From assembly GCF_000009045.1 (NCBI RefSeq), contig NC_000964.3, positions 496,001 through 560,000 on the forward strand: 64,000 bases of DNA, given 5' to 3'. Position numbers and translations under genes: made by a program. Source of the stretch: Bacillus subtilis subsp. subtilis str. 168. Lineage in GTDB: Bacteria; Bacillota; Bacilli; Bacillales; Bacillaceae. The stretch's first letter is position 1. Every line of letters begins with the position of its first letter. Positions 1,768-64,000 of this stretch are shown in pieces. The notes beneath the pieces are model-generated. The model was not told the DNA's origin. It ran no database searches and worked only from the letters and a program-made list of their open reading frames with translations.

Positions 1768-3375
1768 ATGAACAAAAAGAAGCTCTCAATCCGTTGGAAA
1801 ATCACGATCTTATCCTATATACTCGTCATTTTCTCCTTTTTGATCGGCGGCATTGTGCTCATCGGCAACATTCAGCATACAGAGGAGCGGGAGCTGAAAA
1901 AGCGGCTGATGAATACGGCCCGGACGGTGTCAGAGATGACAGAAGTGAAAGAAGCCTTGGCGCGAAAAAAACAAACAGAAGCGGTTCGCCATGCGGTTGA
2001 AGAAATCAGGATGATTAATGAAGCAGACTATATTGTCGTCATGGATATGAATCACATCCGATATACGCATCCTGTCAGCACAAGCATTGGCAAGAAATCA
2101 GAAGGTGCAGACGAGGAGGCAGCTTTTGCGGAGCACATTTATTTCTCTGAAGCAAAGGGCGAGATCGGCACGGCGGTTCGCGCTTTTTATCCGGTAAAGG
2201 ATCAAGACCTGAACCAAATAGGCGTGGTGCTTGTCGGAAAAACGCTGCCGGGGATCGCTGACATCCTGCTTCATTTAAAGCGTGATATCGCCTTCATCGT
2301 TGTGCTGACACTCGGCTTTGGCCTTGCTGGTTCCTTTTTGCTGGCCCGCCATATCAAAAAACAAATGTTTCAGCTTGAACCCCATGAGATTGTCCGAATG
2401 TATGAAGAACGGACAGCGACGTTTCACTCGATGAATGAAGGGGTGATCGCTATTGACAATCGTCTCGTCATTACGATCTTCAATGAAAAAGCGAAACAGA
2501 TCTTTGAAGTGCAGGGGGATCTAATCGGCAAGGTGATTTGGGAGGTTCTCAAGGATTCGCGCCTGCCCGAAATCGTGGAGCGGAACAAAGCGGTTTATAA
2601 TGAAGAAATTCGTGTCAGCGGTAAGGTGATCATGAGCAGCAGAATTCCGATCGTCATGAAGAAAAAAGTGATCGGCGCCGTTGCGATTTTTCAGGACAGA
2701 ACGGAAGCGGCCAAGATGGCAGAGGAATTGACTGGTGTCAGAAACTTTGTGGAGGCGCTCCGTGTCCAAAACCATGAGCATATGAATAAGCTGCACACGA
2801 TCGCCGGTCTCATCCAGCTGGGGAAATCTGAAAAAGCCTTGCAGCTTGCATTCCAGGCGTCAACTGAGCAGGAAAATGTGACTGAATTTCTGCACCGCTC
2901 GATTCAAAATGACGCTGCGGCAGGCCTTCTATTAAGTAAAATCAGAAGGGGAAGAGAGCTCGGCATTGCTGTTCATATAGATGAAAACAGCAGTCTTCAG
3001 CAATTTCCCGAGCATGTTGATCAGCATGATATTGTCGTGCTTTTGGGGAATCTGATTGAAAATGCCTTCGGCTCATTTGAAACCGTTCAATCTGAAGACA
3101 AACGAATTGACATTAGTATCGAACAAACAGATGATATCCTTGCTATTTTAATAGAAGATAACGGCTGCGGAATTGAACCGACACATATGCCTCGCCTTTA
3201 TGACAAAGGTTTTACGGTCAATAAAACTGGCGGCACAGGCTATGGCCTGTATCTAGTGAAACAAATCATAGACAAAGGATCGGGCACGATAGAAGTTGAT
3301 TCACATGCGGGGCAGGGGACATCTTTTTCTATCGTTTTTCCAATGAAGGGGGAGGAAGCACAGCATGGCTCGTAA
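1768..3375 (+). CDS. dctS: CitA-family sensor histidine kinase
   Basis: Two TM segments, PAS region, H-box LRVQNHEHMNKLH, GTGYGL G-box. Confidence 0.95.
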   Translation: MNKKKLSIRWKITILSYILVIFSFLIGGIVLIGNIQHTEERELKKRLMNTARTVSEMTEVKEALARKKQTEAVRHAVEEIRMINEADYIVVMDMNHIRYTHPVSTSIGKKSEGADEEAAFAEHIYFSEAKGEIGTAVRAFYPVKDQDLNQIGVVLVGKTLPGIADILLHLKRDIAFIVVLTLGFGLAGSFLLARHIKKQMFQLEPHEIVRMYEERTATFHSMNEGVIAIDNRLVITIFNEKAKQIFEVQGDLIGKVIWEVLKDSRLPEIVERNKAVYNEEIRVSGKVIMSSRIPIVMKKKVIGAVAIFQDRTEAAKMAEELTGVRNFVEALRVQNHEHMNKLHTIAGLIQLGKSEKALQLAFQASTEQENVTEFLHRSIQNDAAAGLLLSKIRRGRELGIAVHIDENSSLQQFPEHVDQHDIVVLLGNLIENAFGSFETVQSEDKRIDISIEQTDDILAILIEDNGCGIEPTHMPRLYDKGFTVNKTGGTGYGLYLVKQIIDKGSGTIEVDSHAGQGTSFSIVFPMKGEEAQHGS

Positions 3376-5578: not shown

Positions 5579-6631
5579 ATGGCCGCTTTAGTTAAATTTT
5601 TTCAGCACCCGGGAGTAAGGCGTTTCTCCATCTTTGTCGTGTTAACTGGTGTGTTATATCTATTTAAGAGCATGATCAACTTAATATTGCTTACCTTCAT
5701 TTTCACATTTCTAATGGATCGTTTGGAGCTTGTCGTGCGGCAGTTTGTAAGCCAGTTCTTCCGCGTGAGCCAGCGGGTTGTCATTACGTTTCTTTACATG
5801 TTGCTGGCTGTGCTGCTTACAGTCGGGGGCTTTGTGTTTTATCCGGTCGTCGCGGCGCAGATCCAGCAGCTGGTAAAGCAGATTAAACATATTGCGTATC
5901 ATCCTGACAGCATCCCTTTCTTTGATGAGATCACCAGTGTCTTCGGAGATATTAACATCAGTTCATATGTCAAAGAGGGCTTCAATGTAGTGTATACGTA
6001 TCTGGCCGATATCAGCACATTCGGCTTGCAGGTCGTGATGGCGCTCATTCTTAGCATGTTTTTCTTATTTGAGAAAAAACGGCTTTCTGAATTCATGGCG
6101 AAATTTAAAACGAGCAAACTTAGGGTCTTTTATGAGGAGATTGCTTTTTTCGGAAGCAAATTTGCAAGAACGTTCGGCAAGGTGCTCGAGGCTCAATTTA
6201 TCATTGCGCTCGTCAACTGTATTCTGACGTTTATCGCGCTTTGGATTATGCATTTTCCGCAGCTGTTTGGGCTTTCGATTATGGTGTTCTTCCTTGGATT
6301 GATCCCTGTAGCAGGCGTCGTCATTTCCCTGATTCCGCTCAGCATTATCGCCTACAGCACTGGCGGTGGAATGTATGTGCTCTACATTGTCCTTGTCATA
6401 TTCGCCATTCATGCGATCGAAACCTATTTCTTAAATCCGAAGCTGATGTCGGCGAAAACAGAGCTGCCAATCTTTTTCACCTTCACAGTACTCATTTTCT
6501 CTGAACACTTCTTCGGCATTTGGGGTTTAATTATCGGGATTCCGATCTTTGTGTTTCTCCTTGATATTCTGGATGTCACCAACAAGGAAGATAGGTCTAA
6601 AGGACCCCGAGAGAATAGCGATAAAAAGTAG
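5579..6631 (+). CDS. ydbI: AI-2E family transporter
   Basis: Multi-TM protein with GLIPVAG and YFLNPKLMS motifs. Confidence 0.85.
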   Translation: MAALVKFFQHPGVRRFSIFVVLTGVLYLFKSMINLILLTFIFTFLMDRLELVVRQFVSQFFRVSQRVVITFLYMLLAVLLTVGGFVFYPVVAAQIQQLVKQIKHIAYHPDSIPFFDEITSVFGDINISSYVKEGFNVVYTYLADISTFGLQVVMALILSMFFLFEKKRLSEFMAKFKTSKLRVFYEEIAFFGSKFARTFGKVLEAQFIIALVNCILTFIALWIMHFPQLFGLSIMVFFLGLIPVAGVVISLIPLSIIAYSTGGGMYVLYIVLVIFAIHAIETYFLNPKLMSAKTELPIFFTFTVLIFSEHFFGIWGLIIGIPIFVFLLDILDVTNKEDRSKGPRENSDKK

Positions 6632-33255: not shown

Positions 33256-33335
33256 CTTTATTTACAAAGTGCACGCAAATCTGTTTTACTAGGTTAAGAG
33301 CCTACTAAACCAGCACAACACAATTTAATGATCAC

Positions 33336-33421
<86 letters not shown>

Positions 33422-33425
33422 AATG

Positions 33426-33459
33426 ATACCAAGGGTTTTGACACCCTTGGTATTTTTTT
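33426..33459. terminator. Terminator after tRNA-Leu2 (ICE left end)
   Basis: ATACCAAGGG-loop-CCCTTGGTAT followed by a T run. Confidence 0.8.
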
Positions 33460-33504
33460 GTGTTTATTTTCAAATGATTTACTGCCCACAAACTGCCCAC
33501 TTAC

Positions 33505-34611
33505 CTAAAGTAAGTCATCTAATTTATCAGCCATTTCCTTTTGCTTGTTTGGATATAGGTGTCCATAAACATCAATTGTTGTTTTTACAGAACCATGTCC
33601 TAAACGCTCTTTAATTGTTATGTAATCTTCTCCTTGGTGTATTAATAGTGCAACGTGTGAATGTCTAAAATCATGTAAACGTATAGGAGTAAGATCGCTA
33701 TCCTTGCAAAAGTATTTAATTTTCCGACTGAAAATATCTTTTCTTGAAGGTGTATCTTTATATTGAAAGATATAGGTATCATGTGAATGTCTAATACCTA
33801 ATTCATTAAACAACTCTTCTTGTGCTTCTTTCCAACGTTCTAGTAGCTTAAGCAATTTTTTATTGATGCTAACTCGCCGAATCGAATTTTTAGTTTTTGG
33901 AGTAGTAACAACAAATTGACCATCAAGCCAGGTGCACGATTTATGCACATCTATTTCTAATAAGATTTTGTCAATATCTTTCCATTGCAGGGCGAGCATT
34001 TCACCACATCTTAGTCCAGTTAAAAAAGCAACAGTGTAAAAGGTTTTAAACAATAATTGATCTTGAGGAATTAAACTAATAAATTTTTTGAATTCTTCTG
34101 GTCTCCAAAACTTCATTTTCTTTCTTGTTAAAGGTAATCGTTTAACGTTGTCACACGGATTTCTTTTTAAGATTTCTTCATGTACAGCTGTATCAAAAAT
34201 TTTGCTTAGACTAGTCATTATATTATTAACCGATTTATTGCTTAGACCTGTTTCCATTAAATGTTTTCTGAAATCAGTTATTTCTCTATGTGTGATTTTT
34301 TGTATATCAGATTTCAAAAAGTAATCAGATATATGTTTGTTTATAATGTACTTCTGATTCTGATAATAGTTTGGTTTACTATCTATTTCACAACTTGCTA
34401 AATAAATTGAAATTAGAGTCGGAAAGCTTACTGATCTGGACTTTCTTGCTCTTTCTTCTTGAAATTCTCTTCTTAATTTTGCTTCTAATTCTAAAGCCTC
34501 TTTTCTGGTTGATGCTACTGGTCTCGTCCTAATTCTTTCTCCAGTAATCGGGTCAAATCCAAAGCTAACGTCAACTTGATATTGACCATTTTCAAGTTTT
34601 TTTACAGACAT
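33505..34611 (-). CDS. int: Tyrosine recombinase integrase
   Basis: TGLRCGE, HDFRHS, LGH and VYGH catalytic motifs; corresponds to ydcL. Confidence 0.97.
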   Translation of the reverse strand: MSVKKLENGQYQVDVSFGFDPITGERIRTRPVASTRKEALELEAKLRREFQEERARKSRSVSFPTLISIYLASCEIDSKPNYYQNQKYIINKHISDYFLKSDIQKITHREITDFRKHLMETGLSNKSVNNIMTSLSKIFDTAVHEEILKRNPCDNVKRLPLTRKKMKFWRPEEFKKFISLIPQDQLLFKTFYTVAFLTGLRCGEMLALQWKDIDKILLEIDVHKSCTWLDGQFVVTTPKTKNSIRRVSINKKLLKLLERWKEAQEELFNELGIRHSHDTYIFQYKDTPSRKDIFSRKIKYFCKDSDLTPIRLHDFRHSHVALLIHQGEDYITIKERLGHGSVKTTIDVYGHLYPNKQKEMADKLDDLL

Positions 34612-40686: not shown

Positions 40687-40995
40687 GTGTCTGCTGTAGA
40701 TAAACGATTCAAAAGCTTAGGTTTTAATGTGGGCATTCCCTCTTTAGTTTTTGTGAGAAGTTTAAGCAGAGATTGCATGTTGGTTGTTGAAGGAGAACGA
40801 GTAAAAGGATTTGCTGAGTATCGTTACACATTCTATAAAACAAGATACTTGCCAGACGGTCGAATGACTAGCTTAAAAGTTTATATGGAGAATCAAAGCA
40901 TAAAAAGGGTGTTACATCGTGTAGCATCCTTTTTATCTTTCTTGGAAAGAACGAAACAAATTGAACAGAAGGAGTGTGAAAAAGTTGCTCAATAA
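40687..40995 (+). CDS. yddA: RecA/SOS modulator RamA
   Basis: 102-aa ORF between ydcT and conB. The functional name is from literature recall. Confidence 0.8.
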   Translation: MSAVDKRFKSLGFNVGIPSLVFVRSLSRDCMLVVEGERVKGFAEYRYTFYKTRYLPDGRMTSLKVYMENQSIKRVLHRVASFLSFLERTKQIEQKECEKVAQ

Positions 40996-42049
40996 AGAAA
41001 TTGGCTCTGATAAGAAGGAAGAATCCTTTTTTCGGTCTGCTTTTCAAAAACTGAAACGAATTGAAAGACCGGAAAAAGACAAACAAAAAGTACCCCGTGA
41101 CAGGTCAAAGCTGATAGCCGTCACACTATGGTCTTGTGTAGGGAGCTTGCTATTTATCTGTCTGCTTGCTGTGCTTCTGTCAATTAATACTCGCTCCCAA
41201 CTTAATGACATGAAAGACGAAACGAATAAGCCAACAAATGACGATAAACAAAAAATTTCGGTGACTGCTGCCGAAAACTTTCTGTCAGGGTTCATCAATG
41301 AATATATGAATGTGAAGAACGATCAAGAATCTATTGAAAAACGTATGCAGAGCCTTGAAAGCTATATGGTTAAACAGGAAGATAACCATTTTGAAGATGA
41401 AGAACGCTTCAATGTGGATGGTTTAAAAGGTGATCGAGAGTTAAAGGGTTACAGCTTATATAACGTGAAAGAAGGTGATAAAAACAGCCTTTTTCAATAT
41501 AAGGTCACATATGAAAATCTATACCCTGTAGAAAAGGAAGTTGAAAAAGAAGTTAAAGACGGAAAGAAGAAAAAGAAGGTGAAAGAAAAGGTTAAAACAA
41601 ACGAGAAATACGAAAAACAAATGTTGCTGAATATTCCAGTCACAAATAAAGGTGATTCCTTTGCGGTGTCTGCTGTCCCTTATTTTACACAGATTTATGA
41701 TCTGAAAGGCGATATTGCTTTTAAGGGTAAAGAAGAAACTAGAGACGAATATGCAGGCGAGAAAAAAGAATCTATCGAATCATTTCTTCAAAATTTCTTT
41801 GAGAAATACGCTTCTGAAAAGAAAGAAGAAATGGTTTATATGATGAAAAAGCCGGAAGCATTGGAAGGAAACTTGTTATTTGGGGAAGTGCAGTCAGTGA
41901 AAATCTTCGAGACGAAAAAAGGTTTCGAGGTTTTTTGTGCTGTTCGATTTAAGGAAAAAGAAAATGACATTCCGGTAAATGAAAAATTCAGTCTAGAGAT
42001 TACGGAAAACAGCGGTCAGTTTTATGTAAATAAACTCAAACATCAATAG
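40985..42049 (+). CDS. conB: VirB8/TcpC-like conjugation protein
   Basis: Single TM followed by two NTF2-like repeats; TTG start. Confidence 0.9.
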   Translation: MLNKEIGSDKKEESFFRSAFQKLKRIERPEKDKQKVPRDRSKLIAVTLWSCVGSLLFICLLAVLLSINTRSQLNDMKDETNKPTNDDKQKISVTAAENFLSGFINEYMNVKNDQESIEKRMQSLESYMVKQEDNHFEDEERFNVDGLKGDRELKGYSLYNVKEGDKNSLFQYKVTYENLYPVEKEVEKEVKDGKKKKKVKEKVKTNEKYEKQMLLNIPVTNKGDSFAVSAVPYFTQIYDLKGDIAFKGKEETRDEYAGEKKESIESFLQNFFEKYASEKKEEMVYMMKKPEALEGNLLFGEVQSVKIFETKKGFEVFCAVRFKEKENDIPVNEKFSLEITENSGQFYVNKLKHQ

Positions 42050-51305: not shown

Positions 51306-52481
51306 TTGCGGGGTGTTTTCTTAGATAAAGATAAAATTCCGTACGACTTAGTCACGAAAAAGTTAAATGAATGGTATACATCAATAAAAAATGATCAAGT
51401 TGAGCAAGCCGAGATTATAAAAACAGAAGTAGAGAAAGAATTGTTAAACATGGAAGAAAATCAAGATGCCCTGTTATATTATCAACTATTAGAATTTAGA
51501 CATGAGATAATGCTGAGTTATATGAAATCTAAGGAAATAGAAGATCTCAATAATGCTTATGAGACTATAAAAGAAATTGAGAAGCAAGGGCAATTAACTG
51601 GCATGTTGGAATACTATTTTTACTTTTTTAAGGGTATGTACGAGTTTAGGCGTAAAGAATTAATTTCAGCGATAAGTGCTTATCGAATAGCTGAATCAAA
51701 GTTGTCAGAAGTTGAGGATGAAATAGAGAAAGCAGAGTTTTTTTTCAAAGTGTCCTATGTATATTATTATATGAAACAAACATACTTCTCCATGAATTAT
51801 GCAAATCGTGCACTCAAAATATTTAGAGAGTATGAAGAATATGCTGTCCAGACTGTGCGTTGTCAATTTATTGTAGCAGGAAACTTGATCGATTCATTGG
51901 AATATGAAAGAGCCTTGGAACAATTTTTGAAGTCTTTGGAAATTTCCAAGGAAAGTAACATAGAGCATTTAATTGCAATGTCACATATGAATATTGGGAT
52001 TTGTTATGATGAATTGAAAGAATATAAGAAGGCTTCACAACATTTAATTTTAGCGTTAGAAATTTTTGAAAAATCAAAACATAGTTTCTTAACAAAGACT
52101 TTATTCACTCTAACCTATGTAGAAGCAAAACAACAAAATTATAATGTTGCTTTGATATACTTTAGGAAAGGGCGATTTATTGCCGATAAAAGTGATGATA
52201 AGGAATACTCAGCGAAATTCAAAATATTAGAGGGATTATTTTTTTCTGATGGTGAGACTCAATTAATAAAGAATGCATTTTCATATCTGGCTTCGAGAAA
52301 AATGTTTGCTGATGTTGAAAATTTTTCGATTGAAGTCGCTGATTATTTTCATGAACAAGGAAATTTAATGCTCTCTAATGAATATTATCGTATGAGTATT
52401 GAAGCAAGACGAAAAATTAAAAAAGGGGAGATTATTGATGAAAATCAGCCGGATTCTATTGGCAGCAGTGATTTTAAGTAG
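51306..52481 (+). CDS. rapI: Rap family TPR regulator RapI
   Basis: KLNEWY...QDALLYYQLLEFRH Rap N-terminus plus TPR repeats. Confidence 0.95.
   Translation: MRGVFLDKDKIPYDLVTKKLNEWYTSIKNDQVEQAEIIKTEVEKELLNMEENQDALLYYQLLEFRHEIMLSYMKSKEIEDLNNAYETIKEIEKQGQLTGMLEYYFYFFKGMYEFRRKELISAISAYRIAESKLSEVEDEIEKAEFFFKVSYVYYYMKQTYFSMNYANRALKIFREYEEYAVQTVRCQFIVAGNLIDSLEYERALEQFLKSLEISKESNIEHLIAMSHMNIGICYDELKEYKKASQHLILALEIFEKSKHSFLTKTLFTLTYVEAKQQNYNVALIYFRKGRFIADKSDDKEYSAKFKILEGLFFSDGETQLIKNAFSYLASRKMFADVENFSIEVADYFHEQGNLMLSNEYYRMSIEARRKIKKGEIIDENQPDSIGSSDFK
52358..52383 (+). promoter_or_regulatory. Probable sigmaH promoter for phrI inside rapI
   Basis: AGGA-N18-GAAT, the usual arrangement for phr genes. 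Confidence 0.7.
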
Positions 52482-52709: not shown

Positions 52710-53651
52710 GTGGGGGAAAATATGTTTAAAAAAGAAAAAGTCACAGAATACATTTGGACTATACTAATACCAACAATCATCACTTTTATCATTAGTTGGG
52801 TTGGGTCTTATTACAATGGTACTTCGACAGTTAGTATTGGACAACCTACAAAAGTTTCCGGTCAGTATATCACGCCAATAAATATAAGTCCCTATCATGA
52901 TATTAAGGAATTAAGAATAACTTTTCCGCAAAAACTAGATGTAAAACAAATTAGTTCAAATGAGCCTATAAATGTAAAATCAGATAAGAACAATATAGGA
53001 GTTGAAAGTAATTCCACTTTTGAGATTGCGAAAATCGTTGAAAATAATAGCGTTCAGTTGCTAATTACAACACAAAAAAAGTTAAACGATAAGGAAATTA
53101 GAATTGATAAAAATGGAAATAACATTTCTGTAAATTATGAATCTCAGATTGTTAATCCTGCAAAAAAACAATTAATCAATCTTATAATTACGTCATCTAT
53201 TTATTTTATAATGCTTAATATACTAGCATTGATTATGAACAAAAGATGGGATAAGTATTATGCAAAAATGAAAAATGAAATCAAAGAATTTGAGGATAAT
53301 GCAAAAGATCTTGATAAAAAATCAAAGAAGAAAAGCGAGGAATTATCGGAGCTGCGAAAGACCTTGAACCAAGCGTTTGAGGAAACTGATAGGATAAAAT
53401 ATCATGAGAAGAAAAAACAAATCCTCCTCTTAGCTAAGTTAAACGATTATAAAAAAGAACTAACCTTTTGGAGAAATACAATAAGAAAAGTTCTTTATGA
53501 ACTTCCTGATGGAGATAAAAAAGCAGATAAACTAATAGGGACAGTTACATCATCTTTAAAAACGTACGGTACAGTCGAAAAAAACGAGCATGATTATGAA
53601 AGTTTAAAAGTAGCAGCTGCCTTACTAAATGATTCTGATAAGAGATCGTAA
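52710..53651 (+). CDS. yddM: Uncharacterised membrane protein, last ICE cargo gene
   Basis: 313 aa with two TM segments and a coiled-coil C-terminal half. Confidence 0.8.
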
Positions 53652-53872: not shown

Positions 53873-53932
53873 CTAGGTTGAGGGCCTAGTGGGTGAATAA
53901 CCCGTGGAGGTTCAAGTCCTCTCGGCCGCATC
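53873..53932 (+). repeat. attR 60-bp direct repeat (3' fragment of tRNA-Leu2)
   Basis: Identical to 33362-33421. Confidence 0.96.
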
Positions 53933-53934
53933 TC

Positions 53935-53975
53935 AATAATACCAAGGGTTTAACCACCTTTGGTATTATTTTTTT
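53935..53975. terminator. Diverged copy of the attL terminator
   Basis: AATAATACCAAGGG-loop-CCTTTGGTATTATT followed by a T run. Confidence 0.7.
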
Positions 53976-54029
53976 GTGTGGAAAATACGGCTATGGGAGA
54001 AGACTTGCTCACCAAAACTCACCAGTTAC

Positions 54030-54126
54030 TTAAAGTAAGTCATCCAAACGGTCGGCGGTTCCTTCTGTTTATTAGGAAAAAGATATCCGTTCATTGTAAA
54101 AGAAACGAACCATGTCCTATTCGTTC
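54030..54126 (-). pseudogene. Integrase 3'-end remnant
   Basis: Frameshifted pieces ERIGHGS / GYLFPNKQKE / ADRLDDLL* match the Int C-terminus ERLGHGS / GHLYPNKQKE / ADKLDDLL*. Confidence 0.88.
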
Positions 54127-54135
54127 AAAAAAACT

Positions 54136-54179
54136 AAAGGGTGATACATATTATACATGATTAATATGTATCACCCTTT
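54136..54179. terminator. Perfect 18-bp inverted repeat, probable yddN terminator
   Basis: AAAGGGTGATACATATTA-N8-TAATATGTATCACCCTTT. Confidence 0.6.
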
Positions 54180-54239
54180 TCTTTCTTGTTCAACAATCGC
54201 GCTTGAGGAGAACATAAGCTAATACAACTGACTCGATTT

Positions 54240-55259
54240 CTAAAGTTGCTCCATTCTTTTTTTAAACAACTCATCCACAACCTGTTTTAAAATCTCGTAC
54301 GACTGAATTTCCTTGCTCAATTCGTAAATATTAGATAACACAATTAATTCATCTGCGTGATACATTTGTTGGAAATCAATTAGTTCGCGACGAATTGTTT
54401 CTCGATCACCCATGATTGTATACCCCAGTCGACTGTGGAGAATTTCTAATTCAAACTGTGATAACGATTCTAGGAAGTTTTCAGTGGGTGGAATAAGCTT
54501 ACTTAAATTATTTGTATAAATATCAATATACACCTGCAAATGACTTGCAGAAATAAAAGATGCCTCGTCTATAGATTCTGCTGCAATCACATTAATGCAA
54601 GCGATCACATAAGGTTCTTGTAAATAAGAAGACGGTTGGAAATTTTCTCGATAAATAGAGAGCGCTTCTTCCATCGAATGGGGTGAAAATTGAGCGCCAA
54701 ATGCATAGGGTAAACCAAGCTTTGCAGCAATTTCCGCTGAATCCGTTGAGGATCCTAACACAAAAACAGGCACATGCGTTCCAATACCCGGATAAGCGCG
54801 AACCTCACCCTGTACACTCTTATCCCCGACAAAACGCAAAATATCATTTACTTCTCTTTCAAAGAAAAACACTCCATTATGGTTGGAACGACGAATCACA
54901 TCGGCCGTTTTTTGATCCGTTCCGGGTGCGCGTCCTAATGCCAAATCTACACGATTTGGATATAATGTTTCAAGTGTTCCAAATTGCTCCGCTACGATTA
55001 ATGGGGAATGATTTGGCAACATAATACCCCCTGAACCTACGCGAATGTCTTTTGTATTTGCTAATATATGTTGTACAATTGATACGGTTGCTGCACTTGC
55101 ATAAGCGTCGTGATTATGATGCTCTGCAAACCAAATCCGTTTATAGCCCATATTATCTACAGCTTTAGCTAATGACACTGCAGAATCAATCCCTTGTTTC
55201 ATTGTTTCTCCTTGTCTTAATGGAGCAACTGATAAAACAGATATATCAAATTTTTTCAT
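54240..55259 (-). CDS. yddN: Luciferase-like (LLM) flavin-dependent oxidoreductase
   Basis: WFAEHHN, RVGSGGIML and RVDLALGRAPG motifs. Confidence 0.9.
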   Translation of the reverse strand: MKKFDISVLSVAPLRQGETMKQGIDSAVSLAKAVDNMGYKRIWFAEHHNHDAYASAATVSIVQHILANTKDIRVGSGGIMLPNHSPLIVAEQFGTLETLYPNRVDLALGRAPGTDQKTADVIRRSNHNGVFFFEREVNDILRFVGDKSVQGEVRAYPGIGTHVPVFVLGSSTDSAEIAAKLGLPYAFGAQFSPHSMEEALSIYRENFQPSSYLQEPYVIACINVIAAESIDEASFISASHLQVYIDIYTNNLSKLIPPTENFLESLSQFELEILHSRLGYTIMGDRETIRRELIDFQQMYHADELIVLSNIYELSKEIQSYEILKQVVDELFKKRMEQL

Positions 55260-55518
55260 AATTTCACCTCTAAAATAATGAACTTATACAAGATCAATGG
55301 AAAAAACATTTTGAAAAATTGTTTCATATTAAATGGTGTCCATTCCTCTTTGATTTGCATGCAAATAAATATATACTTTCTCAAACGATCAATACATAGG
55401 CAAAATAAAGTTATTTCACAATTTCACTTTACTTTTAAAGTTTTAAGCAAACATAAAAAAATGTTCAGTGAACAAAATATGTAAAATACATCTTATTTTT
55501 CAGAAAGGATACAAGAAA

Positions 55519-55929
55519 ATGATTGATGAAATAGATAAAAAAATACTTGATGAGCTGTCTAAAAATAGTCGCCTTACAATGAAAAAATTAGGGGAAAAAG
55601 TACATCTCACTGCACCAGCAACCGCATCAAGAGTAGTAAAGTTAATAGACAATGGCATAATAAAAGGATGTAGTATCGAAGTGAATCAAGTGAAATTAGG
55701 CTTCTCTATACATGCTTTTCTTAATATTTATATCGAAAAAATCCATCATCAACCCTATTTAGCTTTTATAGAAACACAAGATAACTATGTAATAAACAAT
55801 TATAAAGTTAGTGGAGACGGTTGCTATTTGCTTGAATGTAAATTTCCTTCAAACGAGGTATTAGATCAATTTTTAAATGACTTAAATAAACATGCAAACT
55901 ATAAAGTGTCGATTGTTATTGGTAAATAG
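55519..55929 (+). CDS. lrpA: Lrp/AsnC family regulator
   Basis: IDEIDKKILDEL...LGEKVHLTAPA HTH and VSGDGCY. Confidence 0.9.
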   Translation: MIDEIDKKILDELSKNSRLTMKKLGEKVHLTAPATASRVVKLIDNGIIKGCSIEVNQVKLGFSIHAFLNIYIEKIHHQPYLAFIETQDNYVINNYKVSGDGCYLLECKFPSNEVLDQFLNDLNKHANYKVSIVIGK

Positions 55930-56051
55930 TTAACTTTATAAAACGGAGATGTGCGGTCATATAACATGATATATATGCTCTAAAAAAGCCCTAGGTTGGA
56001 TATGGAATTTACCAAGCTGGGGCCTTTTTATACATTATAATAACAAGCGCA

Positions 56052-56501
56052 TTATTCATCAGACATTAATGAAGTATTATAATGCTTTTTTACTTCCTTA
56101 ATAGACAAATAAAGCTGATAGTTTCCATACTTCAATAAATCATTCAGAAGGTGATTTAAAACTTCTTGTGAATGAACCGTTACCTTCAGAAGATAACATG
56201 CATCTCCCGAAACACGATGAGCTTCGCTAATTTCATTACGAGTAGCAATAAATTTCAATAAATCATCATGCATATATGCATTCATGAAAAAGAAGACAAA
56301 GGCTGTAAAAGAAAACCCCATCTTCAATTCATCAACCACAATCGAATATGCTTTAATGATACCGTTATCCTCCATTTTTTTGATGCGATTGCCTACCGCT
56401 TGTCCTGTCATATGAATTTTTTCACCGATTTCTTTCCATTGTATCCGAGCATTTTTATTTAATAATTGGAGAATTTGAAAATCAATTGAATCAATTTGCA
56501 T
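56052..56501 (-). CDS. lrpB: Lrp/AsnC family regulator
   Basis: IDSIDFQILQLL...IGEKIHMT and HRVSGDACY. Confidence 0.9.
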   Translation of the reverse strand: MQIDSIDFQILQLLNKNARIQWKEIGEKIHMTGQAVGNRIKKMEDNGIIKAYSIVVDELKMGFSFTAFVFFFMNAYMHDDLLKFIATRNEISEAHRVSGDACYLLKVTVHSQEVLNHLLNDLLKYGNYQLYLSIKEVKKHYNTSLMSDE

Positions 56502-56615
56502 AGTAACTCCTTTCACAGTGAAAAAGTTTTACAAAATAGTATTTCATGAGACCATCGAAAATTCAATGGAAATTATATATCCTTATACAGTATAAAAATT
56601 TTAAGAGGTGAAAAA

Positions 56616-57158
56616 ATGACAACAGCTTTATTAGTGATTGATATTCAAAATGATTACTTTCCAAATGGGAAGATGGCTTTAACAAACCCAGAGAAAGCAG
56701 CACAAAATGCGGCTAAACTACTTTCACACTTTAGAAACACAGGCGCACCTGTCTTTCATGTACAGCATATCACAGAAGGTAACATCGCTCATTTTTTCCA
56801 TCCAAATACAGAAGGTGTCGAAATTCATGAGTCAGTACGTCCATTAGAGAAAGAGACAGTCATTGTAAAACATATGCCGAATAGCTTTTTCAATACAGAT
56901 TTAAATGGAAAGCTACAAGAAGAAGGGGTTAAAGAATTAGTTGTTTGCGGTATGATGTCCCATATGTGTATTGATGCAACAGTTCGTTCTGCAGTTGAAC
57001 ATGGTTATGTATGCCAAGTGGTAGAAGATGCTTGCGCAACAACAACATTGCAAATTGAAGATAAAATCGTTCCTGCTGAGCATGTCCATTACGCATTTAT
57101 GGCCGCATTAAATGGTGTCTATGCAACAGTAAAAACCACAGAGGCATTTTTAAAATAA
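56616..57158 (+). CDS. yddQ: Isochorismatase-family cysteine hydrolase
   Basis: LLVIDIQNDYF, KHMPNSF and GMMSHMCI motifs. Confidence 0.9.
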   Translation: MTTALLVIDIQNDYFPNGKMALTNPEKAAQNAAKLLSHFRNTGAPVFHVQHITEGNIAHFFHPNTEGVEIHESVRPLEKETVIVKHMPNSFFNTDLNGKLQEEGVKELVVCGMMSHMCIDATVRSAVEHGYVCQVVEDACATTTLQIEDKIVPAEHVHYAFMAALNGVYATVKTTEAFLK

Positions 57159-57368
57159 AAGAATTTCCTGCGCGAACATAACGTCTTTCTTTTCACAAGA
57201 AAGATGATTCAACAACTTAAAAAAGGATGTTCAGAAAAATACTTCTGGACATCCTTTATTCATTATCTTTTATTGTTTTTCAGTATCATTATTCCCATCT
57301 GATAAAAGATCAAGATGTCCTGTTTTTGATCCATAGTAAGACCATATACAGGGATTGTTTTTGCCATA

Positions 57369-57579
57369 AATATAGATATTGATGAAGGTTTACATAAAGC
57401 ACCTAATTGCTTGATTTACTTTAATGTTAGATCCCTCAATAACTCCATTCTCTTCTAATTTCTCTACTCTAGCTGTAGCTGCTGGGCATGTTAAATGTAC
57501 TCTCTCCCAGATCTTTCATTGAATTCGGCTATTATACATAATTTCTCTATAATTTTTTATCTGTTTGATCTATTTGAAC
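57369..57579 (-). pseudogene. Decayed Lrp/AsnC regulator gene
   Basis: QIDQTDKK / MKDLGERVHLTCPAATARVEKLEENGVIEGSNIKVNQ / TFINIYI segments with frameshifts, a stop and no start codon. Confidence 0.85.
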
Positions 57580-57710
57580 GTTAATTCCTTTCGAAAATAA
57601 AGTCAAAGAGTTAAAACACTTTTTTTTATCTATGTATTCGAACACTGCTGATATTATACACTTAACTCTGTCGATCTAAGACAAATAAAAAAAGAAAGTG
57701 AGTTGTAAAT

Positions 57711-58475
57711 ATGAATATTACACAAATTCGAAATGCAACAATTGTTGTAAAATACGCAAATAAAAAATTTTTGATAGATCCTATGTTAGCAGAGAAAGGT
57801 ACGTACGCTACTTTCCCTGAAACGATCAGACAAGATTTATTTAATCCTTTGGTGAGTTTGCCAACATCAATTGATAACATTCTGGATGGCGTAGATGCGG
57901 TAATTGTTACTCATCTACACCTAGATCACTTTGATGATGTGGCAAAAAACGTATTGCCAAAAAACATCAAAATGTTTGTTCAAAATGAAGCAGATGCAAA
58001 AGAAGTAAAAGCAAGTGGTTTCAAAAATGTAGAAGTGCTACATCAAGACACTGTTTTTGAAGGGATCCAATTAGTAAAAACAAAAGGTGAACATGGCAGA
58101 GGGGAAGAGTTATTAAACTTAATGGGTGATGTTTGTGGATTAGTATTCAAGCACCCAAGTGAAAAAGTTTTATATGTAGCTGGGGATACAGTTTGGTATG
58201 ATGCTATCGAAGACGAGATTCATACACATCAACCAGAAATCATTGTGGTTAATGGTGGAGACAATCAAAGATTAGATTTAGGTTCACTCATCATGGGAAA
58301 AGAAGACATCTATGAAGTTCACAAGGCTGCTCCTCATGCTAAGATTATATCTGTTCATATGGAAGCTGTTAACCATTGGACACTATCTAGAGAAGAATTA
58401 AAAAACTTTAGTAAAGAAAAAGGATTCTCAAGTAATATTTTAGTGCCAGAAGATGGCGAGTCTTACACATTTTAA
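57711..58475 (+). CDS. yddR: Metallo-beta-lactamase fold hydrolase
   Basis: THLHLDH, GEH, AGDT and HMEAVNH motifs. Confidence 0.9.
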   Translation: MNITQIRNATIVVKYANKKFLIDPMLAEKGTYATFPETIRQDLFNPLVSLPTSIDNILDGVDAVIVTHLHLDHFDDVAKNVLPKNIKMFVQNEADAKEVKASGFKNVEVLHQDTVFEGIQLVKTKGEHGRGEELLNLMGDVCGLVFKHPSEKVLYVAGDTVWYDAIEDEIHTHQPEIIVVNGGDNQRLDLGSLIMGKEDIYEVHKAAPHAKIISVHMEAVNHWTLSREELKNFSKEKGFSSNILVPEDGESYTF

Positions 58476-58668
58476 TATGAACACCGACAAATAAATAGAA
58501 GAAGCTCATAATTATAAAAACTAATCATGAGCTTCTTCTAATAATGAATATTTTAAATTTTAAATATATCGAAAATCCTAAATATACGGAATAACAAAAA
58601 TGGAATGTTCCAATGATGACAAAAAAACTTGAAAAGCAACAAAGATGTGTCGTTAGGAGGTAGAATTC

Positions 58669-59979
58669 ATGGTAATGACAAAAAAAGATACAAATATATC
58701 AACACAGCAGCCTCTTTGGTTACAAGGTTATATTGATTCACCAGAAAAACAAAACCAACTTTATAAAAAAACATTAAAAATCTTGATTTTTTCACAAATA
58801 TTTGGGGGAGCAGGACTTGGAGCTGGGATAACAGTTGGGGCGCTTCTTGCACAAGATATGATAGGATCGGAAAATGTAGCAGGAATTCCAACTGCCCTCT
58901 TTACTTTTGGATCTGCCGTAGCTGCCCTGCTTATAGGAGCATCCTCACAACGTTTTGGTCGCAGAGCTGGACTTGCAGGTGGTTTCCTTATAGGCGGATT
59001 AGGTGCTATAGGTGTGATAATCGCGGCTTTAATTAACAGCGTTGCCCTATTATTTGTTTCTCTTCTTATTTATGGAGCAGGTATGGCTTCTAATCTTCAA
59101 GTTCGGTATGCTGGGACAGACCTTGCAAATGAGAAACAACGGGCAACTGCTGCAAGTATGGCCTTAGTTTCTACTACTTTAGGAGCTGTAGTAGGTCCTA
59201 ACTTAGTTAATACAATGGGGGAATTTGCAGATTCAATTGGTGTTCCCAATTTAGCTGGTCCGTTTATTATGTCAGGAGCAGCTTTTATAATTGCTGGAAT
59301 TATTCTCTTAATTTTTCTTCGTCCAGATCCGCTGTTTGTATCAACAGCTATTGCGAATGCTGAGAAAAAAGACGATAAAGTACAAATAGGAGGAAGTCTA
59401 AAAAATCCTGCTATAGACAAAAAAGGAATAATGGTAGGAGCTGTCATTATGATTTTAGCTCAACTAATCATGACAGCTATTATGACAATGACACCGGTTC
59501 ACATGGGTCATCACGGTCATGGTTTAAGCGAAGTGGGATTAGTTATAGGACTCCATATTGCAGCGATGTATCTTCCTTCACCATTGACTGGTTTATTAGT
59601 AGATAAGTTTGGTCGCACAACTATGGCTATTGCTTCAGGTGCCACACTTCTTGCCGCTGGGTTGGTGGCAGCTATTGCACCGGCAGACTCATTATCATTG
59701 CTAATCCTAGCACTAGTATTACTAGGGGTAGGTTGGAACTTTGGTTTACTAACGGGAACTGCCCTTATTATAGATTCAACACATCCATCTCTACGTGCAA
59801 AAACACAGGGAACATTCGATGTTTTATTAGCACTATCAGGAGCAGCAGGTGGAGCCTTGTCAGGAATGGTTGTTGCACATTCTAGTTATACAATACTATC
59901 AATTTCTGGAGCCGTTTTATCATTGTTACTCATTCCAGTAGTTATTTGGTATTTTAGAAGGATTCAGGAAAAAGCATAA
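58669..59979 (+). CDS. yddS: MFS transporter
   Basis: About 12 TM segments; SQRFGRR and LVDKFGR loop motifs. Confidence 0.9.
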   Translation: MVMTKKDTNISTQQPLWLQGYIDSPEKQNQLYKKTLKILIFSQIFGGAGLGAGITVGALLAQDMIGSENVAGIPTALFTFGSAVAALLIGASSQRFGRRAGLAGGFLIGGLGAIGVIIAALINSVALLFVSLLIYGAGMASNLQVRYAGTDLANEKQRATAASMALVSTTLGAVVGPNLVNTMGEFADSIGVPNLAGPFIMSGAAFIIAGIILLIFLRPDPLFVSTAIANAEKKDDKVQIGGSLKNPAIDKKGIMVGAVIMILAQLIMTAIMTMTPVHMGHHGHGLSEVGLVIGLHIAAMYLPSPLTGLLVDKFGRTTMAIASGATLLAAGLVAAIAPADSLSLLILALVLLGVGWNFGLLTGTALIIDSTHPSLRAKTQGTFDVLLALSGAAGGALSGMVVAHSSYTILSISGAVLSLLLIPVVIWYFRRIQEKA

Positions 59980-60561
59980 GCTTATATAACTGTCTTTGAA
60001 GAACCTAAGTAGACATTACTTTACCGGAACCTCCTTTTTCTATTTATTATAGTAAGGAGTTGACATGGCATTAGTGGCATGTGTATAACTACACAATTAT
60101 TTGGGATTCAGAGAGCATGTAATGAACGGAAGAGATAATTATTTATCACTTTTATTATTGTACGGTGTTCTTGTGGCATTAAGTTCAGTCAATTTTGGTC
60201 TAACTGTTTTCTTTTTGTTTTCATCACCTCTCCATATTATTAACAAACACGAAAAGGATTTTAATGAAAATAAAATGATTAGCGTATGTATCTCTAATTT
60301 TCAAAATGAATGAATAGTCCTTTTTAAGATTTACACACTTATTCTCCAAGGAAAAATGACTCAATTTTTCGATTTTTTATGTAAATCAAAAAAGAATCAT
60401 GTTAGAGTAGGTGTGCTGAAAATAATTCAAAAAATTATTTTGCGATATGATTAAAGTAATATTGCCAGAGAGTTTCAATTGGACAAAATTGTAAGTGTTT
60501 AATACACTGGGGCTGCAATCAAATATGCACCTGGAATCAATTGCTAAACGGGGGAGTTTAT

Positions 60562-60738
60562 ATGAACAACAAGAAAAATATCTTTGATATTGTTATGTAC
60601 ATTATTTTCGGTGTGTTAAGTCTTTTTCTAGTTGCAAAAACTGATTATGGCACTGGAGTTTTAGTGTTTGTTGCAATTTTATACCTCGCTGTTATTGCTT
60701 ATAAAATTAAGCAAGTATTTAGTAATTCAGATTCTTAA
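60562..60738 (+). CDS. ydzM: Small two-TM membrane protein (58 aa)
   Basis: ATG after a GGGGGAG RBS; directly upstream of yddT. Confidence 0.75.
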   Translation: MNNKKNIFDIVMYIIFGVLSLFLVAKTDYGTGVLVFVAILYLAVIAYKIKQVFSNSDS

Positions 60739-60762
60739 GGTGTAACACAAGGAGGATTTCAA

Positions 60763-61449
60763 TTGAGAAAGAAAAGAGTTATTACTTGTGTTATGGCTGC
60801 ATCATTGACTTTAGGCTCACTTTTACCTGCAGGTTACGCTTCTGCAAAGGAGGACTCTAAGACAACCCCTTCTTACGAAGAACTAGCTCTACATTACAAA
60901 ATGAAAAGTGAAAAGATTTCATCGAACGGGAAATTAGTTGAAATTGAGTATGTGAGTGGAAATGAAACTCACAAAGTTCAGATGAACGGAAATAATCATA
61001 CTGTAAAAGTCGATGGCATAGAACAAAAAGGTTTAAACTTTGAGTATGATGAAAATGTTGCTAAAAGAACAAATTATGAAAACAATAATTTGAAATCAAA
61101 TGAATTCACAACACAGGCTGCAAAACCTAAAAAGGGATACCATTATGTGGGGACTTTATCTGGGCATACAAAAGCAGCTAAAAATGCGTTATCAGTTACA
61201 ATGTCATTAGTCGGTATTGTCCCTGGCTTGGGATGGGGGAGTAAGGCTGCCACTATTTTATTCTCTTATTGGGCAAAAGAACAAATCCCTGATGCGTATT
61301 ATAAATATGATTTATACGAAAAAGGAGCAATGACTGATAGTTGGTATCAGTATGCTACAGTTCAATTTTTTGAAGATAAAGCTCATAAAAAGAAAATGGG
61401 CAAACCTTGGACAAGTACTCCTGCAAAAGTAGATTTACCTAATAGCTAA
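60763..61449 (+). CDS. yddT: Secreted protein of unknown function
   Basis: Sec signal peptide ending AGYASA; TTG start after AGGAGG. Confidence 0.82.
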   Translation: MRKKRVITCVMAASLTLGSLLPAGYASAKEDSKTTPSYEELALHYKMKSEKISSNGKLVEIEYVSGNETHKVQMNGNNHTVKVDGIEQKGLNFEYDENVAKRTNYENNNLKSNEFTTQAAKPKKGYHYVGTLSGHTKAAKNALSVTMSLVGIVPGLGWGSKAATILFSYWAKEQIPDAYYKYDLYEKGAMTDSWYQYATVQFFEDKAHKKKMGKPWTSTPAKVDLPNS

Positions 61450-61591
61450 TTTTAAAATCACTTTGTCTTTATAAAGGACAAAGTGATTTTTTGTTATACA
61501 GAAGTAAAATCCCTCGTCTGAGGAATCTTGGAAAAAACTTGGTTCAATTTTGATATAACATGTTTTTTTCTTGCTAATTTAGTTTTTCTAT

Positions 61592-61735
61592 GTATCGCTA
61601 CACATTCTAAATAATAAGATATTAGCCGGACGGTTGATGCCAAGCTCAAAAGTTTATATGGAAGTCAAAGCATAAAAAAGGGTGTTACAACGTGTAGTCT
61701 TCTTTTTATTTTGCCAACGTAACAAGTGTGAAAGT
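61592..61735 (+). pseudogene. Remnant of a yddA (ramA)-like gene
   Basis: About 85% identical by manual alignment to 40818-40924; in-frame stop and indels. Confidence 0.85.
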
Positions 61736-61872
61736 AATGATTTGTAGGATCAGTTAAGAAAGGTTTAAGATTAGATATTGAAAAATTTTATATATTTTCA
61801 ATAAAATACTGGTACTATAATAAATGTATACAGATTGTATGGAGATGTAATTAATTAAAAAGGAGTTTTTAA

Positions 61873-62058
61873 TTGCGTTGGAGTAAATGGTTCAATGTTT
61901 TTTGTATAGTAGCATTGGGATCAATATATGGTTATAAATTATTTACTAACCAAGAAGTCAGTACTACTCGTTTAATAATAGCTTCTGTAATTGTGTTGTG
62001 GAATATTGTTGGACTTTTTAGCAAAGAATCAGTAAAACAAGCACAGCAAGCAAATTAA
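61873..62058 (+). CDS. ydzN: Small two-TM membrane protein (61 aa)
   Basis: TTG start after an AAAGGAG RBS. Confidence 0.7.
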   Translation: MRWSKWFNVFCIVALGSIYGYKLFTNQEVSTTRLIIASVIVLWNIVGLFSKESVKQAQQAN

Positions 62059-62158
62059 AAGTCATAAAGTTGGGAAAGAAGGATGTTACTTATGTAGTAT
62101 CCTTCTTTATTATTCCTTGAAAAATGAAACAAATTGGAGATTACAGCTTATATAATCA

Positions 62159-62231
62159 ATTGAAGTCGTTGATTATTTTCATGAACAGGAGATTTAATGC
62201 TTTCTGATGAAATATTATCGTATGAATGTTG
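62159..62231 (+). pseudogene. Remnant of a rapI 3' segment
   Basis: 66 of 74 aligned columns match 52329-52401 (manual alignment). Confidence 0.88.
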
Positions 62232-62407
62232 CAAGAGGAAACGTTACTCAAAGATTACAGGGATGTGATGAACACTCCTCTTTATCGCACTCACCTGACC
62301 CCAAATTGTTGGGGAAGGGCAGGTACGGAAGATAGAGTATTTTTTCTTCGTAACAAATCGAAAAGGTTGGATAATAAAAAACTTATAATCTAAGGCGGTA
62401 TATAGTT

Positions 62408-63001
62408 GTGAAAAAGGCGTTATTTCTTATATTAGACCAGTATGCAGATTGGGAAGGTGTTTACTTAGCATCTGCATTAAATCAAAGAGAAGATTGGTCG
62501 GTTCACACTGTTTCTTTAGACCCTATTGTAAGCTCAATAGGTGGTTTTAAAACATCTGTCGATTACATAATAGGGTTAGAACCTGCAAATTTTAATTTGC
62601 TAGTTATGATTGGCGGGGATTCCTGGAGTAATGACAATAAAAAACTATTACATTTTGTAAAAACTGCATTTCAAAAAAACATTCCAATAGCAGCGATATG
62701 CGGTGCAGTGGATTTTTTGGCGAAGAATGGTTTGCTGAATAATCATAGCCATACAGGTAATTTTGTTTACTTATGGAAAGATTACAAACAATATAAACCG
62801 ATTAGCAGTTTTGTAGAGAAACAAGCAGTAAGAGATAAAAATTTGGTTACTGCTAATGGAACTGCCCCTATTGAATTTACTAATTTAATTTTAGAGATGA
62901 TTGATTTTGATACTCCTGAGAACATAGAGAAAATGATGTATATGAATCGTTATGGTTTTTATCATTTTTGTGATAAATATGGAAATCCATTTGTTGATTA
63001 A
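62408..63001 (+). CDS. ydeA: DJ-1/PfpI family protein
   Basis: YADWEG, MIGG and AAICGA nucleophile-elbow motifs. Confidence 0.88.
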   Translation: MKKALFLILDQYADWEGVYLASALNQREDWSVHTVSLDPIVSSIGGFKTSVDYIIGLEPANFNLLVMIGGDSWSNDNKKLLHFVKTAFQKNIPIAAICGAVDFLAKNGLLNNHSHTGNFVYLWKDYKQYKPISSFVEKQAVRDKNLVTANGTAPIEFTNLILEMIDFDTPENIEKMMYMNRYGFYHFCDKYGNPFVD

Positions 63002-63116
63002 TTTGCTGGAAATGATTTTCCCGAATAGGGGGCTTTGCGATTGAGTTGAATTTCCTAATAAAGCAAAGAAAGATGATTTGAGGTCAAGTTTAACAAATAA
63101 TGCCATCAATATTAAT

Positions 63117-63263
63117 TTGCAGTTATTTCCGATTCCTGATATAATAAAGAAGAATTATTTTTGTTCGGTGTAAAGGATAGTATGAAGATTGACTTTTCGT
63201 CTTGATGATACTTTGGGCAAGGATAGTATATACTGTGTGGTTACACACTAGGAGGCAACAAAA
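63117..63263 (+). promoter_or_regulatory. cspC sigmaA promoter and long cold-shock 5' leader
   Basis: TTGCAG-N17-TATAAT (63117-63145), then an AATTATTTTTG box and about 110 nt of leader. Confidence 0.7.
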
Positions 63264-63464
63264 ATGGAACAAGGTACAGTTAAATGGTTTAATGCAGAAA
63301 AAGGTTTTGGCTTTATCGAACGCGAAAATGGAGACGATGTATTCGTACACTTTTCTGCAATCCAAAGTGACGGATTCAAATCTTTAGACGAAGGTCAAAA
63401 AGTATCGTTTGACGTTGAGCAAGGTGCTCGTGGAGCTCAAGCTGCTAACGTTCAAAAAGCTTAA
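63264..63464 (+). CDS. cspC: Cold-shock protein CspC
   Basis: [15 protein letters not shown]-1 and VFVHF RNP-2 motifs. Confidence 0.97.
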
Positions 63465-63481
63465 TCTTCAATCGTTTATAC

Positions 63482-63513
63482 AAACAGGCTCTTTATATAG
63501 GGCCTGTTTTTTT
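63482..63513 (+). terminator. Terminator after cspC
   Basis: AAACAGGCTCT-loop-AGGGCCTGTTT followed by a T run. Confidence 0.8.
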
Positions 63514-64000
63514 ATGTCTATATCATACTCAATAAAAAACCCTACTCAACGTTCGAGTAGGGAGATGCTACAAGGTAATAGAAAAAGATTTAAAACTTCA
63601 AAGGTTTGTTTACAGTATAACATACTGGATTGACAATATGCGGAATGTATATAAATTATTTAATGTTTTGTTCAAATATAGATAACTGACTCTTTTTTTC
63701 ACTAACCTGTTCGTTCATTTAAGTAAGATTAGATGAATTATAAAAATGGTTTCATCTAAATGTTATCAACTCGCATATCTCTTTTATGAGAAGAAGATAA
63801 ACAATTATTATTCAATGTTGCAGTGGATATAAGAAATTCTTAAAAATAATGAGGAGATCGATTGTTTTTTTCTCCTGGAAATAATCACTTAGAGATACCT
63901 AAAACAATGAAAGCCCTACCTCTCTTCCATCCTTACGGCTCCTTGTCCGTGCCAGTGTGAATCAGGATACTAAAAAAAGTGACTATTTTATTGAGTTTTT

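Follow-up and report, generated by a model that had tools for sequence, protein, structure and literature searches.

Probable remains of older ICEBs1-family elements beside ICEBs1 at tRNA-Leu2 of Bacillus subtilis 168

What is the DNA to the right of ICEBs1? This integrative and conjugative element (ICE) is the main Gram-positive model of its kind, and the DNA beyond its right attachment site (attR) is routinely taken as plain chromosome. We analyzed this flank in a stretch of 64,000 nucleotides (nt) of Bacillus subtilis subsp. subtilis str. 168 (NC_000964.3, positions 496,001 to 560,000), which we call the window and whose own numbering is used throughout. ICEBs1 comes directly after the last gene of a tRNA cluster, tRNA-Leu2 (tRNA-Leu(GAG), 33336-33419), and the 17-bp core of its attachment (att) site has exactly two exact copies in the window, at 33362 and 53873. 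The second opens attR (53873-53932, + strand), a 60-bp direct repeat made up of the core and the 3' part of tRNA-Leu2. A preliminary description, made from the window alone, had proposed that the DNA beyond attR is a decayed older relative of ICEBs1. We conclude that the 9.2 kb between attR and the cspC region very probably derive from ICEBs1-family elements that had integrated in tRNA-Leu2 before ICEBs1 did; there was at least one such older element, and probably there were two or more. The attR of ICEBs1 is at the same time the left att of these older remains.

Integrase, yddA, conB and rapI fragments beyond attR

We compared 53.9-64 kb with ICEBs1 (33.3-53.95 kb) by sensitive blastn, and at the protein level by tblastn with all 25 open reading frames (ORFs) of ICEBs1. 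Four blastn matches were found, with expect values (E) from 1e-6 to 1e-27, and were aligned base by base with ICEBs1 in three alignments. All four keep the order and orientation that the corresponding sequences have in ICEBs1, where int lies at 33505-34611 (- strand), yddA at 40687-40995, conB at 40961-42049, rapI at 51306-52481 and yddM at 52710-53651. The tblastn search found nothing in 53.9-64 kb besides these four fragments.

The first match (53900-54126 with 33389-33609, 70% identity over 236 nt, E = 7e-26) spans the 3' part of the tRNA, the terminator, two short direct repeats and the 3' end of int on the - strand, and so confirms that the layout of the left end of ICEBs1 is repeated to the right of attR. 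The terminator scan places a tRNA terminator hairpin, TTTAACCACCTTTGG followed by GGAAAATACGGC, at 53935-53970 (+ strand); this is the TTTAACCACC terminator, and we refer to it and its flank as G-type. Two CTCACCA direct repeats can be read from the sequence at 54008-54014 and 54018-54024 (+ strand), in the position where ICEBs1 has two copies of CTGCCCAC. Such lineage-specific repeats are present at both ends of related elements, and the CTCACCA pair is putatively a set of arm-type integrase sites of the G-type lineage. The int relic itself (54030-54126, - strand) is 97 bp long, contains the stop codon and about the last 33 codons, and breaks off at the terminator of yddN. Pieces of it are also recovered by tblastn, and Pfam has no family for the small ORFs or for the + strand ORF that overlies it.

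The second match joins 61584-61712 to yddA (40810-40939, 82% over 131 nt, E = 4e-27). With its 3' hairpin this relic covers 61584-61735 (+ strand) and represents codons ~45-90; it is frameshifted, giving two tblastn pieces in different frames, and is 82% identical to ICEBs1 and 81% to a G-type ICE that we describe below. The third match (62076-62136 with ICEBs1 40902-40963, 79% over 63 nt, E = 2e-6), which the preliminary description did not list, is a second copy of the yddA-end hairpin together with the start of conB, also on the + strand. The terminator scan picked out this second hairpin as well (62075-62108), downstream of ydzN and terminator-like, and the relic hairpins at 61670-61712 and 62075-62108 may act as terminators of yddT and ydzN. 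The last match, 62156-62246 (+ strand), corresponds to the 3' end of rapI (52326-52419, 84% over 95 nt, E = 1.5e-18), codons ~341-384, and is also seen by tblastn (E = 6e-4); no remnant of phr was found alongside it. The rapI relic is fused 20 bp past the conB-start relic, which means an internal deletion equal to ~11.4 kb of ICEBs1. The yddA and rapI pieces had been placed beforehand at 61592-61735 and 62159-62231, right to within a few bases, and the region is AT-rich as described, with a GC content of 30-40% in ICEBs1 and in everything to its right in the window vs 42-48% to the left of the tRNA cluster.

Short pieces in an AT-rich region could in principle resemble ICEBs1 by chance, but the E-values given above, obtained in a comparison of 10 kb with 20 kb, the conserved order and strand, and the recurrence of the fragments in other genomes make this virtually impossible. 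The fragments could also have arisen recently from the resident ICEBs1, copied into the neighboring DNA by a duplication or an illegitimate recombination, since they adjoin the element and match its genes. However, they are only 65-84% identical to ICEBs1, and they are found unchanged in ICEBs1-free B. subtilis (L001, L003 and L094; L numbers are our labels for loci and contigs) and also in other species, so that a recent copying is extremely improbable. We also looked for closer matches among unrelated sequences and found none. The yddA and rapI relics are matched by ICEBs1-family genes only, and a plasmid search for closer kin, in which phages were not covered, gave a single weak match on a B. 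velezensis plasmid (74% over 126 nt).

By tblastn the relic region has no intact integrase, excisionase, relaxase or type IV secretion gene, as a functional ICE would need. None of the relic fragments encodes a protein any longer; the block is a fossil.

A living relative and the empty site

The int relic belongs to a lineage that still exists. In B. rugosus SPB7 (L008) the same terminator stands after the full tRNA, and then come GGAAAATACGGC, the CTCACCA repeats and intact int, immA, immR and xis genes, and the same flank stands between the full tRNA and an intact int in L081. The Int of this apparently unnamed G-type ICE has 368 residues and is 55% identical to that of ICEBs1; contigs L081 and L082, which encode an identical Int, continue the element up to conE, so that int, immA, immR, xis, helP, conQ, nicK, conB and conE are all represented by intact genes. 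Window positions 53934-54126 are 92.5% identical over 201 nt to the G-type ICE (L008, L081-L084) vs 65% to ICEBs1, and the int relic differs from the intact G-type int by deletions of 1, 7 and 1 nt. The relic thus shares terminator, CTCACCA repeats and int 3' end with an ICE at tRNA-Leu2 that, unlike the relic, is intact. ICEBs1 and the G-type ICE are 67% identical in int at the nucleotide level vs 95-98% in nicK, 88-96% in yddA and 95-96% in conB, with 88-98% for the conjugation module overall. With ICEBs1 the relics share matches to int, yddA, conB and rapI and the tRNA-Leu2 att site; unlike ICEBs1, they include an int of another integration-module lineage and nothing that is functional for excision or transfer. 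The earlier proposal of an older relative at trnS-Leu2 that preceded ICEBs1 is supported by this comparison, the closer match of the int relic being a related, intact ICE at the same tRNA.

The chromosome of L081 is B. rugosus-like and that of L082 B. velezensis-like, as judged by the type of tRNA spacer, and both carry the same G-type ICE at tRNA-Leu2. Identical Int proteins in two chromosome types suggest a recent transfer between species. L081 carries a shortened yddA (49 amino acids).

What does the site look like without ICEBs1? In natural ICEBs1-free strains of B. subtilis (L001, L003) tRNA-Leu2 is joined straight to the relic flank, and L001 has 0 mismatches in 554 nt to the window flanks joined computationally. 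What is called attB in such strains is thus an old attL, as had been supposed. Since ICEBs1 integrates at this old left att, the tRNA 3' end and the terminator of an ICEBs1-free cell are supplied by the older ICE.

Alternatively, the terminator and the adjacent bases could be native chromosomal sequence that the G-type lineage has copied, only the int piece and the relics to its right being foreign. The terminator and GCGGAAAATACGGC indeed stand after tRNA-Leu2 or attR, with no int relic, in B. sonorensis, B. spizizenii TU-B-10 and B. inaquosorum. However, the DNA to the right of the core at attL is element-derived, and it is precisely this flank that the intact ICE of B. rugosus has. The desaturase gene next to the terminator in those species is, moreover, at least 95% identical across distant species, so that these sites represent exchanged DNA. 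We consider a captured chromosomal flank unlikely, and an ICE origin of the whole flank remains our preferred reading.

The slot between tRNA-Leu2 and cspC is variable in content. The distance from tRNA-Leu2 to cspC is 1.3-2.8 kb in the B. pumilus group, B. sonorensis and B. spizizenii TU-B-10, and in the last two the gene for this 342-residue fatty-acid desaturase lies between them; in B. subtilis L098 it adjoins cspC where ydeA would be. We located it at L067 3194-4222, L010 394-1422, L045 6962-7987, L074 7646-7999 and L098 12073-13101. Its high identity, seen among B. sonorensis, B. spizizenii, B. atrophaeus and B. rugosus, is far above that of core genes, and the gene therefore looks horizontally exchanged at this hot spot.

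Species-representative genomes were scanned with the last 40 nt of tRNA-Leu2, which gave 76 loci. These were viewed as fixed 8-kb blocks, and several arrays of other species were thus seen in part. Wrecks of ICEBs1-family elements after tRNA-Leu2 or after an att copy were seen in many species. Specifically, the tRNA-Leu2 site of B. tequilensis has int pieces, cwlT and rapI, that of B. siamensis half an int and an intact rap-phr pair, and in B. nakamurai and B. velezensis the end of int is fused to the end of rapI. In B. mojavensis the order is cwlT and rapI pieces, an int piece, yddN, lrpA, yddR, yddS, and yddJ and phrI pieces. In B. inaquosorum rapI and phrI pieces lie directly beyond the attR of its ICE, and B. 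glycinifermentans has a near-identical ICEBs1 (Int 99.5%) and, past attR, another int relic with yddI and yddJ. Relics bounded by att copies occur in L093-L097, where the unit measures 1.8 kb, and in Bacillus sp. ISL-51 and N13C7, and arrays of several exact att copies in B. atrophaeus, B. velezensis, ISL-51 and L093-L097. In B. atrophaeus NRS 213 the att 40-mer occurs exactly three times on one contig (L080, L045, L026), at 137.5, 156.3 and 173.8 kb; with spacings of 18.8 and 17.5 kb, the copies would fit a tandem pair of full-size units at tRNA-Leu2, of which the first begins with a G-type flank.

Two further observations concern ICEBs1 and its att site. A B. subtilis variant of ICEBs1 (L004, 11609-15280) has a right end in which a 309-residue product replaces YddM, and genes for rapI and yddK were not called in a 2.7-kb stretch. 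In the window, the spacer that separates tRNA-Leu(TAG) from tRNA-Leu2 contains TTTTACTAGGTTAAGAGCCTAC (33284-33305), which is similar to the right junction of ICEBs1 together with the att core, with 3 mismatches in the 17-mer (0.07 such matches expected by chance). This sequence is kept only in the B. subtilis clade and belongs to the spacer hairpin TGGTTT...AAACCA; its variant core, GTTAAGAGCC, recurs in Bacillus sp. ISL-51, where an element has it at its right att.

One older element or several

Do the fragments stem from one older ICE? The preliminary description had treated them as a single decayed element. The ICE origin stands, and a composite is the likelier structure, as indicated by a junction at 60102-60107 and by two genomes that meet there. 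Bacillus sp. N13C7 matches the window collinearly up to 60102, through the tRNA, the G-type flank, the int relic and yddN-yddS; past yddS it has the right end of an ICE, which carries arm repeats and half of an att core. A diverged yddS-like gene (65% identity at the amino acid level) is present in B. sonorensis, and there, too, an ICE right end comes next, together with a decayed tRNA piece with att. These right ends after yddS imply that yddN-yddS were the right-end cargo of an element. In B. subtilis L094, a strain with no ICEBs1 whose tex is 98.7% identical, window positions 60107-63036 are present at 92.6% identity but yddN-yddS are not; the block comes immediately after an att copy and a G-like flank that is truncated at the stop codon of int. 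A single deletion in the 168 lineage, removing the right end of a first unit, an att copy and the left flank of a second, would explain both comparisons. Judged from these sequences, the ghost is probably the fused remains of at least two elements.

An older ICE could also have kept, by itself, its left end, the yddA, conB and rapI fragments and its right-hand cargo, with yddN-yddT added between int and yddA at a later time, or carried there. All four relics do follow the order and orientation of ICEBs1, and in L094 the yddT-ydeA block comes after an att copy and a G-like flank, so that the yddA-rapI relics might share an origin with the left end. However, the ICE right end and att remnant after yddS in N13C7 and B. 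sonorensis show a block that is not placed between int and yddA, and the junction at 60102/60107 divides the sequence shared with N13C7 from that shared with L094. The int relic is also only 7.5% diverged from its living relative, vs 16-21% for the other relics. A single older element is thus doubtful, and we prefer several elements, with the following contents.

The first unit would consist of the G-type left end, i.e., terminator, CTCACCA repeats and the 97 bp of int, and of yddN-yddS, its own right end and att having been deleted. The intact cargo (54240-59979), identified by ORFs and Pfam, comprises yddN (- strand), lrpA (+), lrpB (-), yddQ, yddR and yddS; the products are a luciferase-like monooxygenase (YddN), an isochorismatase (YddQ), a protein of the metallo-beta-lactamase fold (YddR) and a transporter of the major facilitator superfamily (YddS). 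None of the fetched genomes has the yddN block at this site free of ICE traces. The second unit would comprise the yddT cassette, the yddA fragment, ydzN, the start of conB fused to the 3' fragment of rapI, and ydeA (62408-63001, + strand), the island's last gene within the window and a member of the DJ-1/PfpI family (Pfam E = 5e-39). In L093-L097 ydeA moves together with the whole block 60107-63036. The right junction of the block lies at 63037-63087, between the end of the L094 homology at 63036 and the start, at 63088-63114, of the cspC-region homology to B. sonorensis, B. spizizenii TU-B-10 and the B. pumilus group; no att remnant was detected in this junction. Next to it, Rfam matches above the gathering score are the cspA thermoregulator before cspC (63183-63512) and the small RNA BsrC (63894-63980).

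Two genes of the second unit were considered as ICE markers and rejected. A 58-residue ORF and yddT (228 residues, with a signal peptide), at 60541-61449 on the + strand, match no Pfam family. Their few homologues sit in an SPbeta-like prophage (L085, 9801-10690) and, in B. siamensis (L089, 9801-10681), near hmp in an unrelated variable region, always as a pair, and the two genes thus form a small mobile two-gene cassette, a separate hitch-hiker not specific to ICEs. A partial protein of 134 residues (P0004), 97% identical to YddT and encoded on a 507-bp contig labelled Streptococcus pneumoniae, is probably an assembly contamination. The 61-residue ORF ydzN (61873-62058, + strand), between the two copies of the yddA-end hairpin, has homologues in the B. 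subtilis/amyloliquefaciens group only; these stand in varied contexts outside ICEs, and none is in an intact G-type ICE.

The order of events that we infer is as follows. A newcomer would enter the intact tRNA copy at the left, so that an earlier element is shifted to the right, and the displaced element would then shed its integration and conjugation genes by deletion while some of its cargo stays intact. What seems to be functional still, by its sequence, are the intact cargo genes and the left att, which is used by ICEBs1. In 54-64 kb no att-like sequence was found by sensitive blastn with five att variants or with a query running from the core to the terminator. With no right-hand att core nearby, the block should be unable to excise, and mobilization in cis is not expected in this genome. 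The earlier comparison with cis-mobilizable elements (CIMEs) therefore holds in that the block is ICE-derived and lacks integration and transfer genes; as its attR has been lost within the window, it is not a CIME in the strict sense.

Several observations weigh against this reconstruction. The G-type terminator adjoins the desaturase gene in species that have no int relic, and the ICE lineage may have taken over part of the G-type flank from old chromosomal sequence. The yddA, conB and rapI relics are 79-84% identical to ICEBs1, and for those of yddA and conB the distance to the G-type ICE, from which no rap end was recovered, is much the same; as the two ICEs are themselves so similar in this module, the three relics cannot be tied to the int relic. 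The repeats at the right end in N13C7 are of the TGCCCA type and not the CTCACCA of the left end, so that the first unit may itself be a fusion of two elements. The window holds no third att core with up to 3 mismatches, and with neither a right att nor an ICE right end present, the limits of the units rest on other genomes. Finally, cspC lies within the span of the outer decayed att copies described below, yet it is conserved near the tRNA across the group.

Decayed att copies beyond the window and their meaning

The preliminary description had also suggested a search farther to the right for another att core. We extended the region to the right through 168-type contigs (L099, L101), using window-equivalent coordinates, and scored tRNA 3' copies with the core-to-terminator query. 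Three decayed copies of the tRNA-Leu2 3' end with terminator were found beyond the window, all on the + strand: at 67495-67574 between ydeD and ydeE (82%, 68 bits), at 74267-74328 between ydeJ and ydeK (75%, 44 bits) and at 79627-79713 between ydeO and ydeP (71%, 44 bits). The best match was 22.6 bits in a 63-kb control sequence and 31 bits in 60 shuffles. The 5' half of the tRNA was found in none of the three; only the outermost copy retains part of the att core, and the 67.5-kb copy has none. As in an accretion array, tRNA 3' copies thus stand at 33362, 53873, 67495, 74267 and 79627 on the same strand. A further 3' fragment of rapI, the third on the 168-type chromosome, lies at 64.9-65.1 kb between ydeB and ydzE.

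The identity of the att copies falls with distance from the tRNA, from 100% to 82%, 75% and 71%, and that of the rapI relics from 84% at 62.2 kb to 64% at 65.0 kb. Such a gradient is what we expect if newcomers enter at the tRNA and older units are pushed outward, and with four points from one genome it is suggestive. In B. sonorensis (L010) decayed pieces of the tRNA-Leu2 3' end at 3135-3177 and 6380-6472 lie to the right of cspC and bracket the gene of a yddS-like transporter, so that there too cspC stands between the tRNA and old att copies.

The genome paper of 1997 reportedly flagged much of the region from ydcL to ydeO/ydeP as 'prophage-like region 2'. Tentatively, and with rather less than even confidence, we suggest that this AT-rich region of ~46 kb, from ydcL to about ydeO/ydeP, may have been built by at least 4-5 successive integrations in tRNA-Leu2, each of which then decayed, and that lrpA/lrpB, ydeA, cspC and ydeB-ydeO may be domesticated ICE cargo. 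The interval ydcL-ydgF is wholly dispensable in 168 (PMC10085710), which fits an accessory origin. If the suggestion is true, the decaying att copies would make it possible to date, layer by layer, how ICEs invaded a model organism.

Among the closest known cases is that of Streptococcus thermophilus, in which elements related to ICESt1 and ICESt3, and CIMEs, have accumulated in tandem at the fda site and decayed (Pavlovic et al., 2004; Bellanger et al., 2011); a three-step model of accretion is summarized in PMC5704250. The events would be the same here, i.e., site-specific integration, loss of integration and transfer genes and a newcomer beside the relic, and so is the outcome of direct att repeats, integrase fragments and retained cargo. 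Unlike at fda, the target is a tRNA gene, the family is that of ICEBs1, and the relic beside ICEBs1 has no right att; the B. subtilis array also has several units, with att copies progressively more decayed with distance. In the arrays of tRNA-linked genomic islands of enterobacteria, partial 3' tRNA copies mark old integrations, together with AT-rich cargo and a truncated integrase. The B. subtilis site has all three features; in contrast to the enterobacterial islands, its remains descend from a well-studied family of conjugative elements and can be compared with living relatives. We found no literature on relics to the right of the ICEBs1 attR, though older work in subscription journals was little covered and a prior mention is possible. 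The locus is a new example, in a model organism, of a known process of accretion and decay, with no new mechanism.

For ICEBs1 itself, the finding means that the flank left after curing is ICE DNA of another lineage, still with its putative arm repeats. Integration-site experiments should be read with this in mind, and it also affects what a related ICE would encounter on entry. An origin as retained cargo can account for yddN-yddS and the yddT-ydeA block, and possibly for the genes up to ydeO. The tRNA-Leu2 site offers a tractable natural case of accretion and decay, with living relatives of the older remains, intermediates bounded by att copies in sister species, and att copies that decay along a gradient.

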